DNA from: Hyphochytrium catenoides
Lineage: Eukaryota > Protista > Hyphochytriomycota
Assembly (NCBI GenBank): GCA_900088475.1
Contig: FLMG01004490.1
Span: 1-39,144 of the forward strand
DNA length: 39,144 bases
Reading direction: 5' to 3'
This document shows positions 6,696 to 30,734 of this stretch, piece by piece. Numbering within the stretch: the first letter of the stretch is position 1; the number at the start of each line of letters is the position of its first letter. Position numbers and translations under genes: made by a program. The notes under the pieces were generated by a model that made no database searches, was not told the DNA's origin, and saw only the letters and a list, made by a program, of their open reading frames with translations.

Positions 6696-7568
6696 GGAGC
6701 TGGCACTCGATTCTCAAAGTCCTAAGCGGATGAGAAGCTAGGAGCAGCTGCCAGCTTCAATGCGCAGCAGCAGCTCCGAACGATGAGGCCCAAGGTCGCT
6801 CCTCCCCCTAGCTTAGTCTGGCTGCCTCCGATGACAAGAATCACCCCCCCGCCAGGTGTTCGCTTACAAGAGGAAAGGAGCAGATAGTTTTGGCGGCGGG
6901 CGGCCCGGGAAAGGAGTTCCCCCTTGGATGCGGCGCTAGGTGACACGCTTACCGCTGCTGGATCCTTGCGATCTGCTCAGCTTTCTCGCTCTGTGTCACT
7001 GAGGGTCTGCTGCTGCTGCTGCCTGCCTGCCTGCGTTCTATGCTGAGGTGAGCGGCCCGTGCAGGGTAGGGCAGGGAGGGTGTCGGTGCCTCAGAGAAAG
7101 AGGAGGGCGGGCATCGGATGTGAGGAATGAGGAAGGACTACTCGTAAACGGCAAAAGCAGCCCCCAACAATATCACTTCTGAACTCCCCCAGGACAGAGA
7201 AGCAGGTCTGAGGGGAGGTGTGGGAGGAAGAGGAAGAAGATCACTCTCTCTACCTACAGTGATCCCTCCTCATAGGCTCATAGGAGAGCAGAAGGAGAGG
7301 AGAGGCACGAGTGATCGGAGCTCGGCAGGAGGTCGGCAGGCCTGGCGGGCGGCAGCAGATAATGGGACGACATAGGCAGTGCGACCGGGATGACGGCGCT
7401 CTTCAACTGAAGGCAAGTCACGGCGGGCCGTCGGAAAGTGTCCACGGTGCCAGATCCAAAACCAAAGAGTGTCGGATTCGAGAGCCTCTGGACCAATGTA
7501 GAGCAGCCGCAGTGACTTGCGGATTACATCGACTACCGACTGAAAATTAGCACGCCTTGCTGCTGATC

Positions 7569-8712
7569 ATGGGAGCGGGTAACAAGAGACCACGACCAGA
7601 AGATCGTGCGCCGAAGCTGCCTGTCGATCGGCCGACCGCCGGGCTACGGAAGCAGCCTGCTTCGACTTTCCTCCAAGTGAGTCTCANNNNNNNNNNNNNN
7701 NNNNNNNNNNNNNNNNNNNNNNNNNNNNNNNNNNNNNNNNNNNNNNNCTGGACTTTGTCTCCATTGCCGCTGTGCGTGCGACAGGTAGAAGAGACTGTGC
7801 TTGGTCAGGCTGTGTTCAACGGCTTCCTAGACTCGCTGTTCAAGGTAACAGTCGCTTCTTTGGTCAGTCGCCGTTGGCTGGCCGGGGGCCTCCACTATGT
7901 GACGGCGCTCGACCTGCACCAGACGAAGATTACCGATGAAGTACTGCTCCATGTTGTCTGTCGACGATATCCGGCGCTCGAGACCTTGGATCTGCGGTGG
8001 TGCGATGGCCTGACGGGCGAGGGGTTGTCCTGTCTGGGCCAGCTCTCTAGCTTGAGAGTTTTAAACCTCAGGGGATGCACGGCCATATCTGATGGAGACC
8101 TTGCCGCTCTTGTTTGCTGTCCGCTTCAAGAGTTAGAGCTGACCGGTTGCCTGAAAGTAACAGATCGAGCACTGCGGGTGCTGAAAGAGATTCCGCAACT
8201 GGAGCGACTGCGGCTGTCGATGTGCCATCAGATAACGGATGGGGGACTTGCTCTCTTTCAGCGCTCGGCTTTAAAGGAACTGGAAGTCGCCTGCTGTGCC
8301 AGACTGACTGACAAGGCAATGGCCTCCATCGCCACCCTGTCACACCTGCAGTTCTTGGACATCAGCGGCTGTCGATTCATATCTGATCTCGGACTAGCCT
8401 TCCTTCGCCAAATCCNNNNNNNNNNNNNNNNNNNNNNNNNNNNNNNNNNNNNNNNNNNNNCGAGGGTCTCAGGCTTTGCGAGAGGAGTTTTTGAAGTCTC
8501 TGACAGCCCTGCCGAAGCTTCACACGCTAGATGTTTCCTGCTGCGAGCGCCTGACAATGGAGAGCCTGGAGAGGGCTCGAAAGCTGTTCCGCCCCGAGGT
8601 TGAGATCATCGACAGCTTTCCCCGCTTTCCACTAAAACCACTACTCGACACTGTCACGGATCAGCCCCAGGTTGAAGCAGGAGGAGCAGAAGCGGCCACA
8701 ACCTTGACTTGA
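7569..8712 (+). CDS. F-box/leucine-rich-repeat (FBXL, RNI-like) protein; intron about 7677-7784; two N gaps
   Basis: F-box-like FLQVEETVLGQAVFNGFL...LVSRRW, then Cys-containing LRRs (LETLDLRWCDGLT, LRVLNLRGCTAISD, LQFLDISGCRFISD, LHTLDVSCCERLT). The frame change falls in gap 8416-8460. Confidence 0.8.
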
Positions 8713-11970: not shown

Positions 11971-14029
11971 ATGACGCTGTTGATAGACGGCGTCCCGGAG
12001 GGTGGAGATGTCCTTCGCATCCTTGCGATAGTCCTGGCTCTTTATCTGCTCTATCATGCGAGTTGGACTTATCATGTCATCAGGACCCTGCCCAGAGATC
12101 TCAGGTAAGCTTAGTACCCGTCGATGCGCTGATGAGCCTTCGTTGGTCCTATCGTCATTGCCGTCCTAACCCCTGGGTGCGCCTTTCTTTGGCTCACCAT
12201 GGCGTTCCGCAGCGCCTTAATGACCTTCATCCATGTCACGGTCTCCATGAAACTCTTGGCGCGCCAGGGAAAAACAGTGCCGGAGCTCTTCGATGAGACG
12301 GCAGCCCGTCGGAAGGACGCGACCGCGATTATATTTGAAGATCAGCGCTGGACGTTCACGCAACTGCGGGATCGGACCAACGCCGTGGCGAACTACTTCA
12401 GCCGACAGGTAGCCCCTCCCTTGAGCTCTATGTTGGGAAGCCTCTAACAGCCTTGGGTACGTGTTGCAGGGCTATAAGAAAGGCGACGTCGTCTCGCTGT
12501 TTATGGACCAGCGCCCCGAGTTTATTGCCTTCTGGTTAGGCCTTGCAAAGCTGGGAGTCCAGGTTGCGCTGATCAACTTTAACCTCCGCGGCGCCCCTCT
12601 TCGGCACTGCATCAGCACTGTGAGCTCCAGAGCCATTATCGTCGGAAGCGAGCTCTCTTCTTACCTAAAGGAGGTGCAAGGAGAGCTTGAAGGTGTGGAG
12701 GAGGTCTTTATCTCTGGTGGAAAGCAGGAAGGGTACAGAGCTGTGGACGAGGTGCTGAGTGCCGAGAGCACAGCGCCTGACTATCCGCGACACCCTGGTG
12801 ATTTCCACGAGAAGCTGCTCTTTATCTTCACAAGTGGGACCACGGGCCTGCCCAAGGCCGCCATCGTCCGCAACGACCGGTTTTATTATCAGTTCAAAGC
12901 CATCAACGTCTTTTTCCGCATCCGCCCCGCGGACATTATCTACGTGACTCTGCCCATCTACCATAGCGCAGGCGGAGTGGTTGGCGTGGGCAACATGCTC
13001 CTGGCGGGGGCCACGATTGTCCTCAAGAAGAAATTCTCCGCCAGTAACTTCTTCAAGGACTGCACAGAGCACAAATGCACTGTCATCCAGTACATCGGAG
13101 AGATCGTGCGCTACCTCAACTCCACGGCGCCATCGCCGTACGATACAGCGCATAACGTGCGGGTGGCCATAGGGAATGGTCTCAATGGCAAGGTTTGGGC
13201 GGAGTTCCAGGAGCGCTTCCACATCCCACAAGTAGGAGAGTTCTATGGGGCGACGGAGGGCAACACAAGCATGGTAAACAGCGTCAACAGAACCGGCGCT
13301 TGCGGCTTCAACTCCATCTTCCTACCTTTCGTCTACCCAGTACGTACCGTGCGCTTTGACGTGGAAAATGAAGAGCTAATCCGCGATAAGAGGGGATTTT
13401 GCATTCCATGCCGTCCAGGTGAGATTGGAGAGCTTATCGGCTATGTCAACATGAAGAGCCCGCTTCGTAAGTACGATGGCTACGTAGGCCAAGAGCATAC
13501 ACAGAAGAAGATTGCACGGGACGTCTTTCGCAAGGGTGACATCTGGTTCCGCACTGGAGACCTGCTGATGATGGATGCAGACGGCTTCTACTATTTTAAG
13601 GACAGGATTGGGGACACTTTCAGGTGGAGGGGGGAGAATGTCTCGACTGCAGAAGTGGAGGAGGTCGTAGCCAGAGTTTTGAATAATAGCACACCTGTGG
13701 CCGTCTATGGCGTCCAAGTACCTGGCAGTGACGGCCGGGGCGGGATGTTGGCCATTGGCGGGGGTGAGGAGGAGCAAGTGGAGGGGTTGTACGAGAAGCT
13801 GAAGAGTCAGCTTCCTTCCTACGCCGTCCCACTCTTTATCCGGCTCCTGCAGTCGATGGAGACTACAGGGACTCACAAGATCGTCAAAACAACGCTGAAG
13901 CAGGAGGAGTTCCATCCCGCGCGTGTTGGCAAGGACCCGGTGCTGGTCCTGGACAGGAAAGAGGGCAAATACGTGCCTCTCGATGCCGCGCGGTACCAGC
14001 AGATTATGGCAGAGCAATGGAGGTTCTAG
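11971..14029 (+). CDS. FATP: Long-chain fatty acid transport protein / very-long-chain acyl-CoA synthetase (SLC27/FATP, FAT1 family); exons 11971-12104, 12213-12408, 12470-14029
   Basis: N-terminal TM then TLPRDL; AMP-binding FIFTSGTTGLPKAA; EFYGATEG; FATP motif DVFRKGDIWFRTGDLL...FKDRIGDTFRWRGENVSTAEVE. Confidence 0.95.
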
Positions 14030-14366: not shown

Positions 14367-17300
14367 CTACGTGAAATAGTCGTTGAAGTTCAGTTGGCAG
14401 AGCGCCTCACTCAGGTACTGGGCGGCTTTGGTCCTGGCCATGGCTGTCAATATGATGATTACGTATCGATTCGCCTTCATAAACTCGTCTGCCGTGTCTT
14501 GAGCTAGTGCGAGGTGCCGTGAGCGCTCCTGCTCCGTCATTCTGAGACCTGAAGGTGAAAGTAACACCGAGATCGTGAGATAAGGCAGAAATGGAAAGAC
14601 TTTAAGGCAAGGGTGAACAGAATGGCATAGAGGACTCTAGGCAATCGGGAACTTGGCCGCAGATCATGCAGCAAGCACGAGAGGTTCAATGGTTTGGTTA
14701 GCGGACCTGACCTACCTTGACTGAGGTAGAGGGCAAGCTCCTGCCTAAACTTGATAGCAAGGTTCATCATGTCCCTGAGGTAGTGGAGCACCATCTTACT
14801 CCGCGGTACCAGGAAACAGCGCTCGAGAATAAGCTCTAGATACTCCTCATGGGCTCTCTTCAGGGCCTCCACTGTATCTGCTGCCTCTAATGCGGCCTCC
14901 AGTCGCTTCCAAGCGGTGTGAAGGACCTGGTTGAGCAGAAACGACTGCAACCCGCTGAGGAAGTGGAGAATTTGGCTTACTACGGCTAAGAGCCTATATC
15001 AGCAGGGCGAGACGAGATCTCAGTACAATAACAATGATTATCCGGAAGACGAGAACGTGAGATAGACACCACAGAGAGGAAGAGCAAAAGATGATCGGAA
15101 GGGCGCAGCTAGGTGGAATCTGGGAAAGGATTGTCCAGAGGGAAAGATCTACATGCCTGCGATGGGAAGGTGAAAGCACAAGCTTCTTCCTCGCCTCCAA
15201 GTGTAATTGATCGTACAGAGAGCGGACCCGCTTGACCTGCAGGAGGAGACGCATCGCGCTGTTATACTGCCGGAGAGACTCCTCGCTCAGGATCATCCTA
15301 AGAGGTCCTTCTACAACGTACTCAAACCGCAGCAGGGCCATGATGTTCACGTCTGAAGGGGGGCAGCGGGCGCCGGACTCTTCAACAGTGACTGAGAACC
15401 TATCAAACATCTGCCGGACGTGCTCGGGGTCCACCGAACGGTTGCGTTCCCTTTCAGCTAGACAGATGCTGCCATAGATTTGGCTGGTCAGTGTCTGAGA
15501 GAGAGAGGCACTCAACAGGTGATTCAGGACAAAGGAGTCCGCCCAAGAAACATCTCCGCTGTTAAGTCTGACGCAAACAAAGCGGACCAACGGCCCTAGC
15601 AACTCCTCGTCCGCCATGAAGAAAAATGACCGCATAGCTCTTAAGTGCGCTGCAAGCTGCAGACGGAGGAGGAACGAATCCCTCAGAGCTCTGTCTACTA
15701 GCTGGTAGTGATTCAGTACTGGTTGGCACAGCTGCTGGTCAAGCACGCGGGGCCATGAGGCCGTAGGGTCACCTAGCGCAGCCATCACACGGTCCGGCCA
15801 GCCTTCAAAAGTAAATAGCGTGTGATTGTCGGAACTGCCGCTTGAGAAGACGTGCCGCAGAAGATGCGCCTTCACCCCTACTTCATACAGGACCGGCGCG
15901 AGGTCAAGGAGGAAGGCTGGTATCGCCGCTTGATGTATGCCGAACTTGCTATCGCTCCTCCCTTCTTCAGCTGAGGTCAGAAGTGCGTCAACCTTGTGGA
16001 TGAATATCTCTCCATTGAGATCCAGTAACTCCCCTCTCCGGATCCAGGGTTCGAAGATCTGGAGGTAGCAGGCTAAAGACTCTGAGAACACAGCAGCAAG
16101 CCGCTGGGATGGTGAACGCAACCTCTCAGACCCCGTGAAGGTTTCTTGGGCTCCTTTCCCAGCTAAGGTCCTGTGAAGAGACGTAAGGAGAGTCGCAGTC
16201 TGAGTCCTGCAGCCGTGTCCGTCCGAATCCCCTGATGTTAGGACGTGGCACTCCATAGCGCTACGAGCCACCCTACTTAGGGCTGCGAAGGTGTCCAAGT
16301 CTTGCTCCAGCAGTGACAAGAGCTCCAGCACTGACATTTCCCCATCGGCACTCAAGTCCAGGAGCCGTTCCTCAAACTCCTCTACTAGACTGGACAATGC
16401 GCCACTCATTGCCCTCACGGTGGAGGAACCTCTGCCCTCATTAGCCAGCTCAGCACAGGAAAGTACAAAGTCTCTGCACGGCTGCAGATAGTTCGCCAAC
16501 TCCAAGAAGCGCTGGAGCACCTCAGAGCAAAGCGATGGCGAAAGTCCGGCGAAGGCGATCGCTCCAAGCTGCTCCTTCCTCTTGAACCAGCGATAACCTT
16601 GTGAAGCAGTATCTTCCTCAAAGATGACGGCCGGGAAACCTCGAAGAAGCCAGTGCAGAAGCTGTACCATCCGTACCTCTGGGAAGATCTTACAGGGCAA
16701 ACATAGGCCAAGGGACTGAGAGGGATCACTAAGAGGGCTGGCGGGACGAAGAGTCTCCTGCCAAAGCCGCCGCTCGTCTCCAAAGCCAAAGGAAAGCCCG
16801 GTCACCTCTTCAAGTGTCATTTGTTTTAGCTGTGCACTTAACTCTGGAAGGGTCGGGCTTGTCTCGACCTCCTCGTCATGTCCAGCAGCGCCATCTTGGC
16901 TGCGAGGCTCAATGGGAACAGGTAGATCCTCAACTGGCGGGTCCTCATGATCCGAGAGGCCCGAGTGCTCCCAAGTGGATGTGCTGTCTGAGCCGCAGCT
17001 GTCCTCCGACGATAGGTTCTGTTCCTCATCCAGAGCTTGTGGCTTCTCTTCAGCAATGAGCGTCCCATCGGTGAGCTCGAGCTCAAACTCGTCGAAGGGC
17101 TCCGAGAGCGATGTGGGCCGATCCGAAAGCAGGAGTAACAACCGGAGGATGTCCTAGAGGACCAAGACCGGTAAGAAAGGACGGTCATTGGCCACGAAGA
17201 GTAGTGATCTTGGCCCGAAGACACTGTTAACGCGGTGAAACTTACGTGTGCGAAGGGATCTTTGGGTCCGACCCGCTTCAATAAGACTTCCACCTTGGCC

Positions 17301-26512: not shown

Positions 26513-29500
26513 TTACAGTCCTGGGCCATCAATGCTGGCTACCGTTCCTTTCTTGGCGCTTGACTGCATTATGAAGGTCGTCGCCGCTTCCGTCCTCACA
26601 AACCTTTGAAAGGTGGGAAGCAGCAGACTGAGAACTTCCTTCTCCAGAACCTTGGCTGTCTCCTCAAGTTCCGTGCTACTCATCAGCACCTTGCCTCGGC
26701 CGCTATCCTTGCTCCGTATTACCTTCCTTAGGTCAGCAGAGATGTTGAGCTCACAAGGCGATTGCAAGGCAATGTACTTGATCACTATCTCCTTGAAGAT
26801 AAGAGCACGTTTCTCCGGCTGCTCTACCTCGAAAAAGCGAGACAGATCCTCCCAGGCCAAGAGGTTCTCCTCAGCCATTTGCTGCACGAGGAACTGTCGG
26901 AACTTGGTTTTGAGCAGCAGATCCGACACTAGCGCCTGCTTCAGCTGCTCACAGGTCGCAACAGAGGAGAGAAGCTCAAAGTTCCTAGGGTAGAGGAGAG
27001 AGAGAATGTCGGCATGTAGAGGAAGGAGGGAATGTTGGCATGAGACGCGTCCCAGCATAGCGGAATGGGAGACAAAATGAAAGAGAAAGAAACTCGTGGA
27101 AACCCGCAGGAGGGAAAAGGAGAGAACCCAAGCTCCTATGAACGCGGCGGTAATTAGGGAAAGAGGAATGAGAGGGCAGTCATACGAGGGAGGCTGGTTG
27201 AAAGGCATAGAAGATAAACTTACATATGATGCCGACTCTGCACGGCGTATGTCCCCGACCTTGACACCCTGCTGGCGATCAGCTTTGGCAGGAACCAGGC
27301 CAGCTGGAAGACCGTGATCTCAAGAAGGACTGCGTGCTGGAGAAAGATCTGAGGTCCCAGAGGGTACATGTCAATCGTCAGCCCCAGATAGAGCCTGATC
27401 GACTCAAAGCCAAAGAGAACTACGGCTGCCAGGCGGAACTGGCGGACGTGAGGCATATACCTCGCCAGGTCGCTGGTCTGGAAGAGCAGAAAGGCAAGTG
27501 AGGCGCCAAGAACTACCTTCCATATCGCCACAAAGTACGCCACACGCTGAGGCCGGAACCGAGTGGGCACCCCGACTATCCATTGACTCATAATGGTTAC
27601 CTCGGTCAAGGGTCTGGCGGCTGCGGGATCCTCTACAATATCAAAGAAAGAGCTTATGGCCGACGCAGCATAGATGAACGGAAGTCCCACGGCGATCGCG
27701 CGTTGCAGCTTCCTCATCTTTTTCAGAGAGTGCGGCGACCGCAATGCACTTTCATCTCCGCCCAGAAAGCCGAACTTAAGGATGGCAATGGGCGCAGAGA
27801 TTGTGCTGATTATCAGCGTGGCGAGGAGCCCATCGAGTATGAAGGCGTAGTCATATGGGTCCATCGCGGGAGGCACCCACAGGAAGAAGACGAGGCACGC
27901 TTGAGCTAGCAAGGAGCCCAACAGGATGGTTTGCGATGGGATGCCTGCTGCCATGAAAGCGTTCTCTCGGCGGTGACGGACCAAAGCTCCCAGCAGAAGA
28001 GCTGTGCTCAGGAAGGTGACAGCAAAGTGGCAGATGAGACCGCTTGAGTCGGCTGAGCCTAGGACTAAGTGGTTACACTCGATCGCGTTTGCAGGCAAAA
28101 GAGTTTGCCCATGGAGGCAGTGACTCTCTGGCTTCCAGTTGAACGTCACAAGTAGACTCTGCTCGTCTGTGACGCACTGTGACCCCAGCGTGGGCTGCAT
28201 ATCTGACAGTTGGCAGAGCGGCTCGGGCTCTAAGACGGAGTATTGTCCTACCCGGATCTTTCTCAACAGCTTGCGGCTCAGCTCTTGGGCTTCAGCTGTG
28301 GGCGGGATTGCGATGTCGAGGTCCGTGTTCAGGGCCCACTTGGCAAAAGAAGCATACACAAACGCAAGAGAGTGGTAATCTTCCTGCCAGTGTCTCCGTA
28401 TCGCGATATTGAAGGCTGAGGCTATGGGCCAGCAGCCAGCTTCCTCATAGACTGGGCTGACGGGCTTGAAGATCAGCCCGGTTGCCCCTTCAAGGGGCTT
28501 GTTGTCCTCGTCCTCTGACACTGAGTCATACAGCTTTGCTCCTGGAATGCCCGCCTGACAGGCCTTCAACTGAAGAGATGAGCTGGACAGCGGTCCTCTC
28601 CCCCGGGTGCTTTCGCCGTTATCGCTGCTGGGGACAGGCAGAAGCAGGTCCAGCGTGCTCTGGAAGATCTCAGGAGAGGTCCACACCAGCCCCAGCCCGC
28701 CAACCGTGGACGTGACTGCGGCAGTCACTAACTCATCTCGAACCATTGCACGGATATTGGTGCTGCCCTCAAGGAGGCGGGTTGTGAGGCCGTTGCAGTC
28801 ATGGAAAAAGCCAGAGTCCACAGCGTCAAGAACCGTGCAGACTGTCTGGGCTAAGAGAGTGCGTGGACCGTCAAGATAGAGTTGAATAGATACTGAGGGT
28901 AGGCTAGCACTTGGGTTCAGAGCCTGAATTTTCCCGTCATTCCACTACCATATCGTGCCCTTTAGAATCTCTCCTAGCACCTCCAGAGAAACATTGAGCC
29001 GAGCGACTCCTTGCAAGTTGAATATCAAAGACACGGGAAGTGTGAAGAGAGGCAAGAGCACGTGATCCTGGAAGCCCGCGGAGGCTAAAGAGAAGCTCTG
29101 GCTGGCAAAAATGGACAAATTGCTTGCCATTCCTAAGCCTATATCCTCGATCAACGGACCAGACCTGAGGTTCGAGCCCGCTTCCTTATTAAAGCCATCA
29201 TAGTAAGAGGCCAGGAAGGTATCGAGGAAGAGTCCTGGCAGCCCAACGACTGGCCCCAAGTCCTTCTTAGCCAATTGCACTAGAGAGCAAGCATCCACCG
29301 AGCAGTCTGTGACTCGATCTGTACCAAGATTACTGGGGGCACAAAGGATCTTTGTCTGTACGTCTGCGTCGATAAAGCTTCGAAAGTATTCAGTGAGCGT
29401 TGAGAAGCCCGTCGCCCTAGCGATGTCACTGAACTGTTGGCTGGTCAGCGCCCAGTGAATCCATTCCAGCATGGCCTGCCGCTCATGGCAGGTGTTCATG

Positions 29501-30734
29501 GTGACGTTGGTTCTAAAAATAAGATAGGAAATGGAGATGATAGGCCAGCCGCCGCTGGCACTGGTGTCGATAACAGGGGCCCTCCAATGTTCGTCGAACT
29601 GGGCCTCAACCCAGACCAGTGAGGCCATGACGGAGTCTGACGAGGCTACGACAGGTGTCCCAGCTCTGTTCATGAGACGAGCGACTGGCAGATGATAAGT
29701 GGAAGCTTCACTGAGAACAACATAGCCGATGCTGTAGGGCGTGCTTTGCACCTGGAGGCAGCAGGTGATGAGTCGAGTAAGTCTTCACTGTCCCTTGTTG
29801 TTTCTTCCGTCTCCTCCTCATCAAACAAAAAGCTTAACTTACCGTCACTGCAACGCCTGCCGTCCCCTTCGCCTCGTAGTATCGCCAAGTCCAGCCCTGG
29901 CCATCCCTGCAGGTCACCTCATTGAACGTCCCCGTGCCTGCCAGGCGGCTAGCGTTTGCTTCTGGACCGCACCATCGAGGCTGCTGAGACGAGGGCACTC
30001 GCTGGCTGAAGACTGTATCAAAGGATCCGAGCGCTGATGTCATGACTTGAGACGTTCCTGAGGAGTCCTGTCTCACGACCAGGGTGATGGGATAATCGAT
30101 AGGCTCCAAGCCTGGGTTCAGGGCTTTTATCTCAGGATCATTCCACCTGCAGAAGAAAGGAGAACAAAAGCCGAACCCATACTAAGAGACTGCAGACCCG
30201 CCGCCGAAAGGAAAGGAACCGAGCACTAGCAACGCGAGCAGCTTCTTCCACTTACCACGTGATAGCGCCCCTGAAGATACGAGCCAACACCTCGCGAGAT
30301 AGGAGGAGATCCTTTACACCTGGCAGATTGAATACTGGCACCACGGCTGAGAGACAGAGGGGAACCTGCATTAGGTCCGTGTAGGTGGCAAAGTCACTGC
30401 TATCTAGCGGAGCATCTACCACACCAAAAGCTGAGAGATTCGAAAGGAGCTTGGTCTTCCCAGCCCCAGATCCCACGGGATCATAGTTAATGCGTGTTGG
30501 GATCTCCCCAGCTGAAGTGCTGGAGGTGAACTGATGGTATAGGCGGTTAACTCGTCTCAGGAGATCTGTGGGAAGCGTGCCTCCCGCCACGTAGAGAGAC
30601 ACAGGGGGAGGATTCTGAGGGCTTCCATCAGCCTCTCCTGTGCTTAGGGTTAAACCGGAGCTCCTAGTAGGAAGCCAGAGTGAAGAGCTCATGAAGAGGA
30701 GACATGGGAGGATCCTGAGACAGATATTTCGCAT
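26513..30734 (-). CDS. PstS-PstS-7TM(class C-like)-RGS receptor; exons 30734-30256, 30146-29843, 29751-27224, 26984-26513; one in-frame TAG at 28947-28945
   Basis: Signal peptide; PstS motifs AGGTLP, YDPVGSGAG, FGVVD, GAITWWNDPEIKALNP, VRQDSSGT, IGYV and GGWPIISISY; second repeat GTIW*WNDGKIQALNP; seven hydrophobic helices ending WFLPK; RGS motifs FRQFLVQQMAEENLLAW, YIALQSPCELNIS and FQRFVRT. Exon lengths total 3783 nt, which is 1261 codons including the terminal stop. Confidence 0.85.

Follow-up and report, generated by a model that had tools for sequence, protein, structure and literature searches.

An in-frame TAG in a receptor gene of Hyphochytrium catenoides with PstS-like, seven-transmembrane and RGS parts is probably an ordinary nonsense variant

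A receptor gene of Hyphochytrium catenoides carries an in-frame TAG, and this codon is genuinely present in the assembled sequence (contig FLMG01004490.1; the window is the whole stretch analysed, 39,144 nucleotides). With a probability of roughly 0.78, we consider the TAG to be a nonsense variant of the ordinary kind, present in the DNA itself and affecting one gene of a multi-copy receptor family. To judge from the genome background, the TAG allele is most likely heterozygous in the diploid isolate; less likely, both chromosomes carry it and the receptor is a pseudogene of very recent origin, its loss being buffered by 10 or more paralogues. An earlier note on this DNA had left three options side by side. 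The recent nonsense allele is favoured here, the switch by editing or readthrough is left unsupported, and an assembly error stays as a minor rival.

The gene was rebuilt from the sequence as four exons on the minus strand, and GTAAGT...YAG forms the boundaries of all three introns. Its parts are as follows, with a slash marking the splice site.

26513..30734, minus strand: whole receptor gene, four exons
30734-30256, minus strand: exon 1, with a Pfam PBP_like_2 match within it
30255-30147, minus strand: intron 1, 109 nt, phase 2 (TG/G)
30146-29843, minus strand: exon 2
29842-29752, minus strand: intron 2, 91 nt
29751-27224, minus strand: exon 3, which holds the in-frame TAG
28948..30734, minus strand: coding part 5' of the TAG, 529 codons
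28945..28947, minus strand: the in-frame TAG (plus-strand CTA), in exon 3
28036..28944, minus strand: remainder of PstS-like domain 2 and a Cys-containing linker, 3' of the TAG, placed by colinearity with the paralogues (query residues 1-345)
27292..28035, minus strand: seven hydrophobic segments in a hydropathy scan, read as a 7TM domain
27223-26985, minus strand: intron 3, 239 nt
26984-26513, minus strand: exon 4, terminating with TAA
26594..26926, minus strand: RGS domain in exon 4 (Pfam PF00615, E 3.4e-11)

Counted within exon 3 the TAG is codon 269, and over the whole gene it is the 530th. It directly precedes the conserved Trp of a W-[ND]-D motif in PstS-like domain 2, where G-T-I-W-stop-W-N-D-G-K-I-Q-A-L-N-P is colinear with the domain 1 sequence that results from splicing out intron 1, G-A-I-T-W-W-N-D-P-E-I-K-A-L-N-P. 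The 529 codons before it encode a signal-peptide-like N-terminus, the whole of PstS-like domain 1, a linker and ~100 residues from the start of domain 2, so that the stop falls inside a domain and away from any domain border. Past the TAG the frame stays open for 573 codons in exon 3, one split codon and 156 codons in exon 4, and both the seven hydrophobic segments and the Pfam RGS domain are encoded within this stretch. The earlier note had reported a single in-frame TAG followed by about 730 open codons with 7TM and RGS parts; both statements are borne out, the former in the minus-strand frame of exon 3 and the latter by hydropathy and the Pfam match.

Regarding the architecture, the homology and profile searches were run on the exon pieces singly. 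Residues 8-110 of exon 3 match the C-terminal part of Mycobacterium tuberculosis PstS-1 among proteins of known structure. The Pfam search of the exons gave no 7tm_3 match in this receptor copy, and a feature search for the receptor region led to clusters with PBP_like_2 plus 7tm_3; fusions of these two domains are present in other protists. By Pfam and hydropathy, a PBP-type ectodomain, seven membrane segments and an RGS domain are thus combined in one gene, and this architecture of tandem PstS-like domains, 7TM and RGS is interesting in itself.

The gene belongs to a family. At least 10 further PstS-like/7TM loci lie in the genome, with ~23-40% identity, and their open frames of 444-1188 codons each contain no in-frame stop.

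Contig C3832, 3266-5128, 9402-11012 and 18802-20628: paralogue loci, three clustered on one contig
Contigs C2229, C3424, C3702, C788, C2457, C1638, C2629 and C4239: further paralogue loci

Among the family loci, only this gene and the C1638 locus have an RGS match immediately 3' on the same strand. RGS domains are strongly expanded in this organism, with 71 Pfam RGS matches in the 61 Mb genome. Outside the genome, relatives are few. A protein search by words with the 573-residue piece past the TAG gave zero matches, and an exhaustive search of 1.84 billion representative proteins (query window 27225-28944, minus strand) returned only three weak relatives and no orthologue, in collections from which the organism's own proteome is apparently absent. 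These relatives show E values of 6e-7 to 3e-4 and 28-31% identity; P0001 and P0002 carry PBP_like_2 plus 7tm_3, and P0003 carries PBP_like_2 only. A look-up of the exact product of the reading frame past the TAG in the contig collection gave no entry.

The paralogues and distant homologues allow the codon at the TAG position to be compared across the family. Paralogue matches to the pieces 5' and 3' of the TAG abut with exactly one sense codon between them, and in nine paralogous domains of the same genome this codon is AGG, CAT, AAC, ACT, AGA, CTA, CTA, TCA or AAG. The three distant homologues have F, A, Q, T and K at the position. The residue is T in M. tuberculosis PstS-1 and K in E. coli PstS, the computed PstS-1 alignment ending at the residue that precedes the W-[ND]-D motif. 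Among the compared sequences, Trp is found at the TAG position only in domain 1 of the gene itself. Therefore, the view that the stop lies opposite a Trp holds against the gene's own domain 1 and does not hold against the nine paralogous domains and the three distant homologues, in which the position is variable; the comparison of paralogues that the earlier note had proposed reveals no conserved Trp there. The conserved residue of the motif is the Trp after the TAG. The TAG is also one step from codons for K, L, Q, S, W, Y or E, several of which are seen in the family. Since the position varies, an ancestral TGG cannot be inferred, and with the neighbouring Trp as the conserved one and seven amino acids within one step, TGG has no special claim as the ancestor.

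The background of the genome accounts for how such a codon may enter an assembly. The H. catenoides genome is diploid, with 1,393,505 SNPs in 65.7 Mb, or about 0.0275 per site on most scaffolds, and it was assembled at 610x coverage with Platanus, which was picked for allowing multiple ploidy, the haplotypes being merged (PMC5795050). Because two haplotypes were merged into one sequence, the consensus can show a TAG while the other chromosome is intact, and the combination of diploidy, high SNP density and a merged consensus means that captured heterozygous nonsense alleles are to be expected. If a fraction of a percent of the several hundred thousand coding SNPs is nonsense, we estimate hundreds of heterozygous stops genome-wide, about half of them showing in the assembly. 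No second haplotype contig of the gene was found: a search of the genome with both exon 3 pieces gives only the window itself at 100%. We propose that the TAG arose as a recent single nonsense change in one family member, that the other chromosome would carry a sense codon at this site, and that the haplotype-merging Illumina assembly would have kept the broken allele in its consensus.

The intact frame past the stop also limits its age. No further lesions are present in the 729 codons examined past the TAG, in which 3.3% of substitutions would create a stop. By a neutral-decay estimate, a frame that has stayed open over these codons allows a neutral divergence since the stop of at most ~4% down to 1% (95% level) for indel-to-substitution ratios of 0 to 0.1. 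With this limit at or below the allelic divergence of the isolate, the variant would be young, which is consistent with a polymorphism.

The same assembly holds three microbial rhodopsin genes, at 7223-8107 and 15707-16882 of contig C2531 (adjacent) and at 6417-7183 of contig C3799. Their translated exons score ~2.2 bits per residue against the solved HcKCR1 and HcKCR2 structures, close to identity, and the genes are, in this order, HcKCR2, HcKCR1 and a third that is presumably HcCCR; they mark the genome as that of H. catenoides.

The alternative that survives best, though we regard it as unlikely, is an assembly artefact, in which the TAG is in neither haplotype and was produced by the merging of two heterozygous SNPs into a chimeric codon, or by gap closing or polishing. 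At a SNP density of ~2-2.75%, it is not rare for a codon to contain two SNPs; the consensus is a patchwork of both haplotypes, and some pairs of the sense codons seen at the position in the family could combine to TAG. Bubble merging in the assembler, however, normally holds neighbouring SNPs in phase. Furthermore, the 610x coverage makes a plain base-call error very unlikely. Within its 39 kb contig the site occupies a central position, and neither Ns nor repeats occur close to it.

We think it considerably less probable that the stop is recoded, either by an adenosine deaminase that converts UAG to UGG or by ribosomal readthrough, in which case one gene would give two products, a secreted PstS-like protein of 529 residues and the full-length receptor. 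The ~730 intact codons past the TAG are also what a recoded gene would show, and the UAG has U at -1 and G at +1, the neighbours favoured by known A-to-I systems (PMC11156358). A Trp does occupy the homologous position in domain 1 of the gene's own product; this resemblance loses its force with the paralogues and distant homologues, since the position is not a conserved Trp and the main argument for UAG-to-UGG editing falls with it. The biological setting also argues against editing. Stop-correcting A-to-I mRNA editing is documented in filamentous ascomycetes, where it proceeds via ADAT2/3 (PMC11156358, PMC10962958, PMC5496914), whereas the host here is a stramenopile, outside the setting of the stage-specific editing machinery of those fungi. 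A Pfam search of the genome found A_deamin at one locus, on contig C2209, and six dsrm matches, none of them on that contig. This lone deaminase locus, with no double-stranded-RNA-binding domain on its contig, resembles the tRNA deaminase ADAT1 and not ADAR, and no ADAR-type gene combining deaminase and dsRNA-binding domains was found in the genome. ADAR-based stop-correcting mRNA editing is known in animals and their viruses; to our knowledge, stop-correcting mRNA editing has not been documented in stramenopiles.

The local RNA structure gives no help to recoding. The 141-nt fold around the TAG has a minimum free energy of -33.2 kcal/mol against a shuffle mean of -37.4 (z +1.09), with 175 of the 200 shuffles folding at least as well, so that no stable double-stranded structure around the TAG was found in this comparison. 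Depending on window size, the target A is unpaired with a probability anywhere between 0.07 and 0.99, and no consistent hairpin loop emerges; the earlier note had likewise seen no complementary editing hairpin. The same note had judged the UAG-U context poor for readthrough, and rightly so: the context UAG-UGG-AAU-GAC has U at +4 and no CARYYA-type hexamer, and the local folds show no stable stimulatory structure downstream of the TAG. The protein would be poorly designed for the purpose as well. With the stop ~100 residues into domain 2 and ahead of its second-lobe part, the truncated form would consist of an intact domain 1 followed by a piece of domain 2 that could not fold, which ill suits a secreted-protein/receptor switch. 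Lastly, the TAG is ~1.7 kb upstream of the last exon junction, which would make its transcript a typical target of nonsense-mediated decay. With no ADAR-type enzyme, no consistent editing hairpin and no leaky context, and with the Trp position variable, the proposed switch finds no support, and we infer that recoding at the TAG is absent.

Two further explanations are very improbable. Under the first, the organism would read TAG as sense, either because the codon is reassigned or because a suppressor tRNA decodes it, and this is contradicted by the end of a FATP-like gene on the same contig, which we used as a control, and by the long open frames of the paralogues, which lack any in-frame stop.

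14027..14029, plus strand: TAG ending the FATP-like gene (reading frame 12461-14029)

Human FATP2 has 620 residues and this protein 522; residues 100-616 of the former align with residues 4-518 of the latter, which leaves four residues in each past the alignment and places the TAG at a colinear end. The TAGs that fall within actin, histone and RGS matches mark intron boundaries, and a Myb Pfam search of the genome found no TAG inside matches. The ends of histone H3 and H4 genes have no bearing on TAG, all seven of those sampled using TAA or TGA. TAG works as a stop in this genome; the earlier view that it is not globally reassigned agrees with the FATP gene end and the stop-free paralogues. 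The supporting claim that TAG ends other genes here holds for FATP and probably fails for the reading frame of a gamma-tubulin complex protein. The latter (14994-17141, minus strand) runs to a TAG, with GCP_C_terminal matched only to profile position 138 of 309, and this partial match suggests that the TAG probably belongs to an intron and does not terminate the gene.

Under the second, the TAG would lie within a very short or unusual intron or be skipped by alternative splicing, and here the resemblance of TG/GTAGTG at the stop to the domain 1 donor TG/GTAAGT at the homologous codon, together with frame-preserving GT...AG pairs around the TAG (the shortest 36-45 nt), is outweighed by candidate donors (GTGGAA, GTGCTA and GTAGTG) that are weak and differ from the GTAAGT of the three real introns, by lengths far below the real 91-239 nt, and by the fact that each candidate would delete residues from the conserved W-N-D...L-N-P block, where all paralogues align colinearly. 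One sense codon in every paralogue and colinear flanks indicate that the site is coding. Intron 1 (30147-30255) does split, in phase 2, the domain 1 codon homologous to the TAG codon; as domain 2 runs colinear with every paralogue and has no intron there, we regard this correspondence as coincidental.

If the TAG is a nonsense allele, as we favour, the site has no mechanistic importance and serves mainly as a caution. In this merged assembly of a highly heterozygous genome, any single in-frame stop should first be considered a candidate heterozygous nonsense allele, and recoding proposed only afterwards. Where nonsense-mediated decay removes transcripts of a broken allele, RNA reads would come disproportionately from the intact one, and this bias, seen without matching DNA reads, could pass for A-to-G editing. 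If recoding were true, this would be the first stop-correcting mRNA recoding in a stramenopile lineage, with one gene giving a secreted PstS-like protein and a PstS-7TM-RGS receptor.

Finally, we compared the gene with known systems. The UAG to UGG editing of AMD1 in Fusarium graminearum (PMC5496914, PMC11156358) likewise concerns an in-frame UAG in an otherwise intact gene and a favoured triplet. In contrast, the present case is in a hyphochytrid stramenopile and has neither a consistent hairpin loop at the A nor a conserved Trp. The ADAR-edited amber/W site of hepatitis delta virus would be alike in the change from UAG to UGG and in the switch between short and long proteins, and differs in that the H. 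catenoides genome has no ADAR-type gene and the TAG no extended double-stranded structure. As a receptor, the gene resembles 7TM RGS proteins of the plant AtRGS1 type and class-C-like receptors with PBP ectodomains in its PBP-type ectodomain, seven helices and C-terminal RGS domain; it differs in that no Pfam 7tm_3 match is detected in this copy and that its ectodomain is a tandem of two PstS-like domains. Heterozygous nonsense alleles of diploid, largely clonal stramenopiles, of the kind that haplotype-merged assemblies display, differ from the present case in that heterozygosity of the TAG site is read here from the genome background, and they share with it the setting of a diploid genome, here with ~2% SNP density (PMC5795050), a single stop one base from sense codons, the absence of any other lesion and a redundant family.
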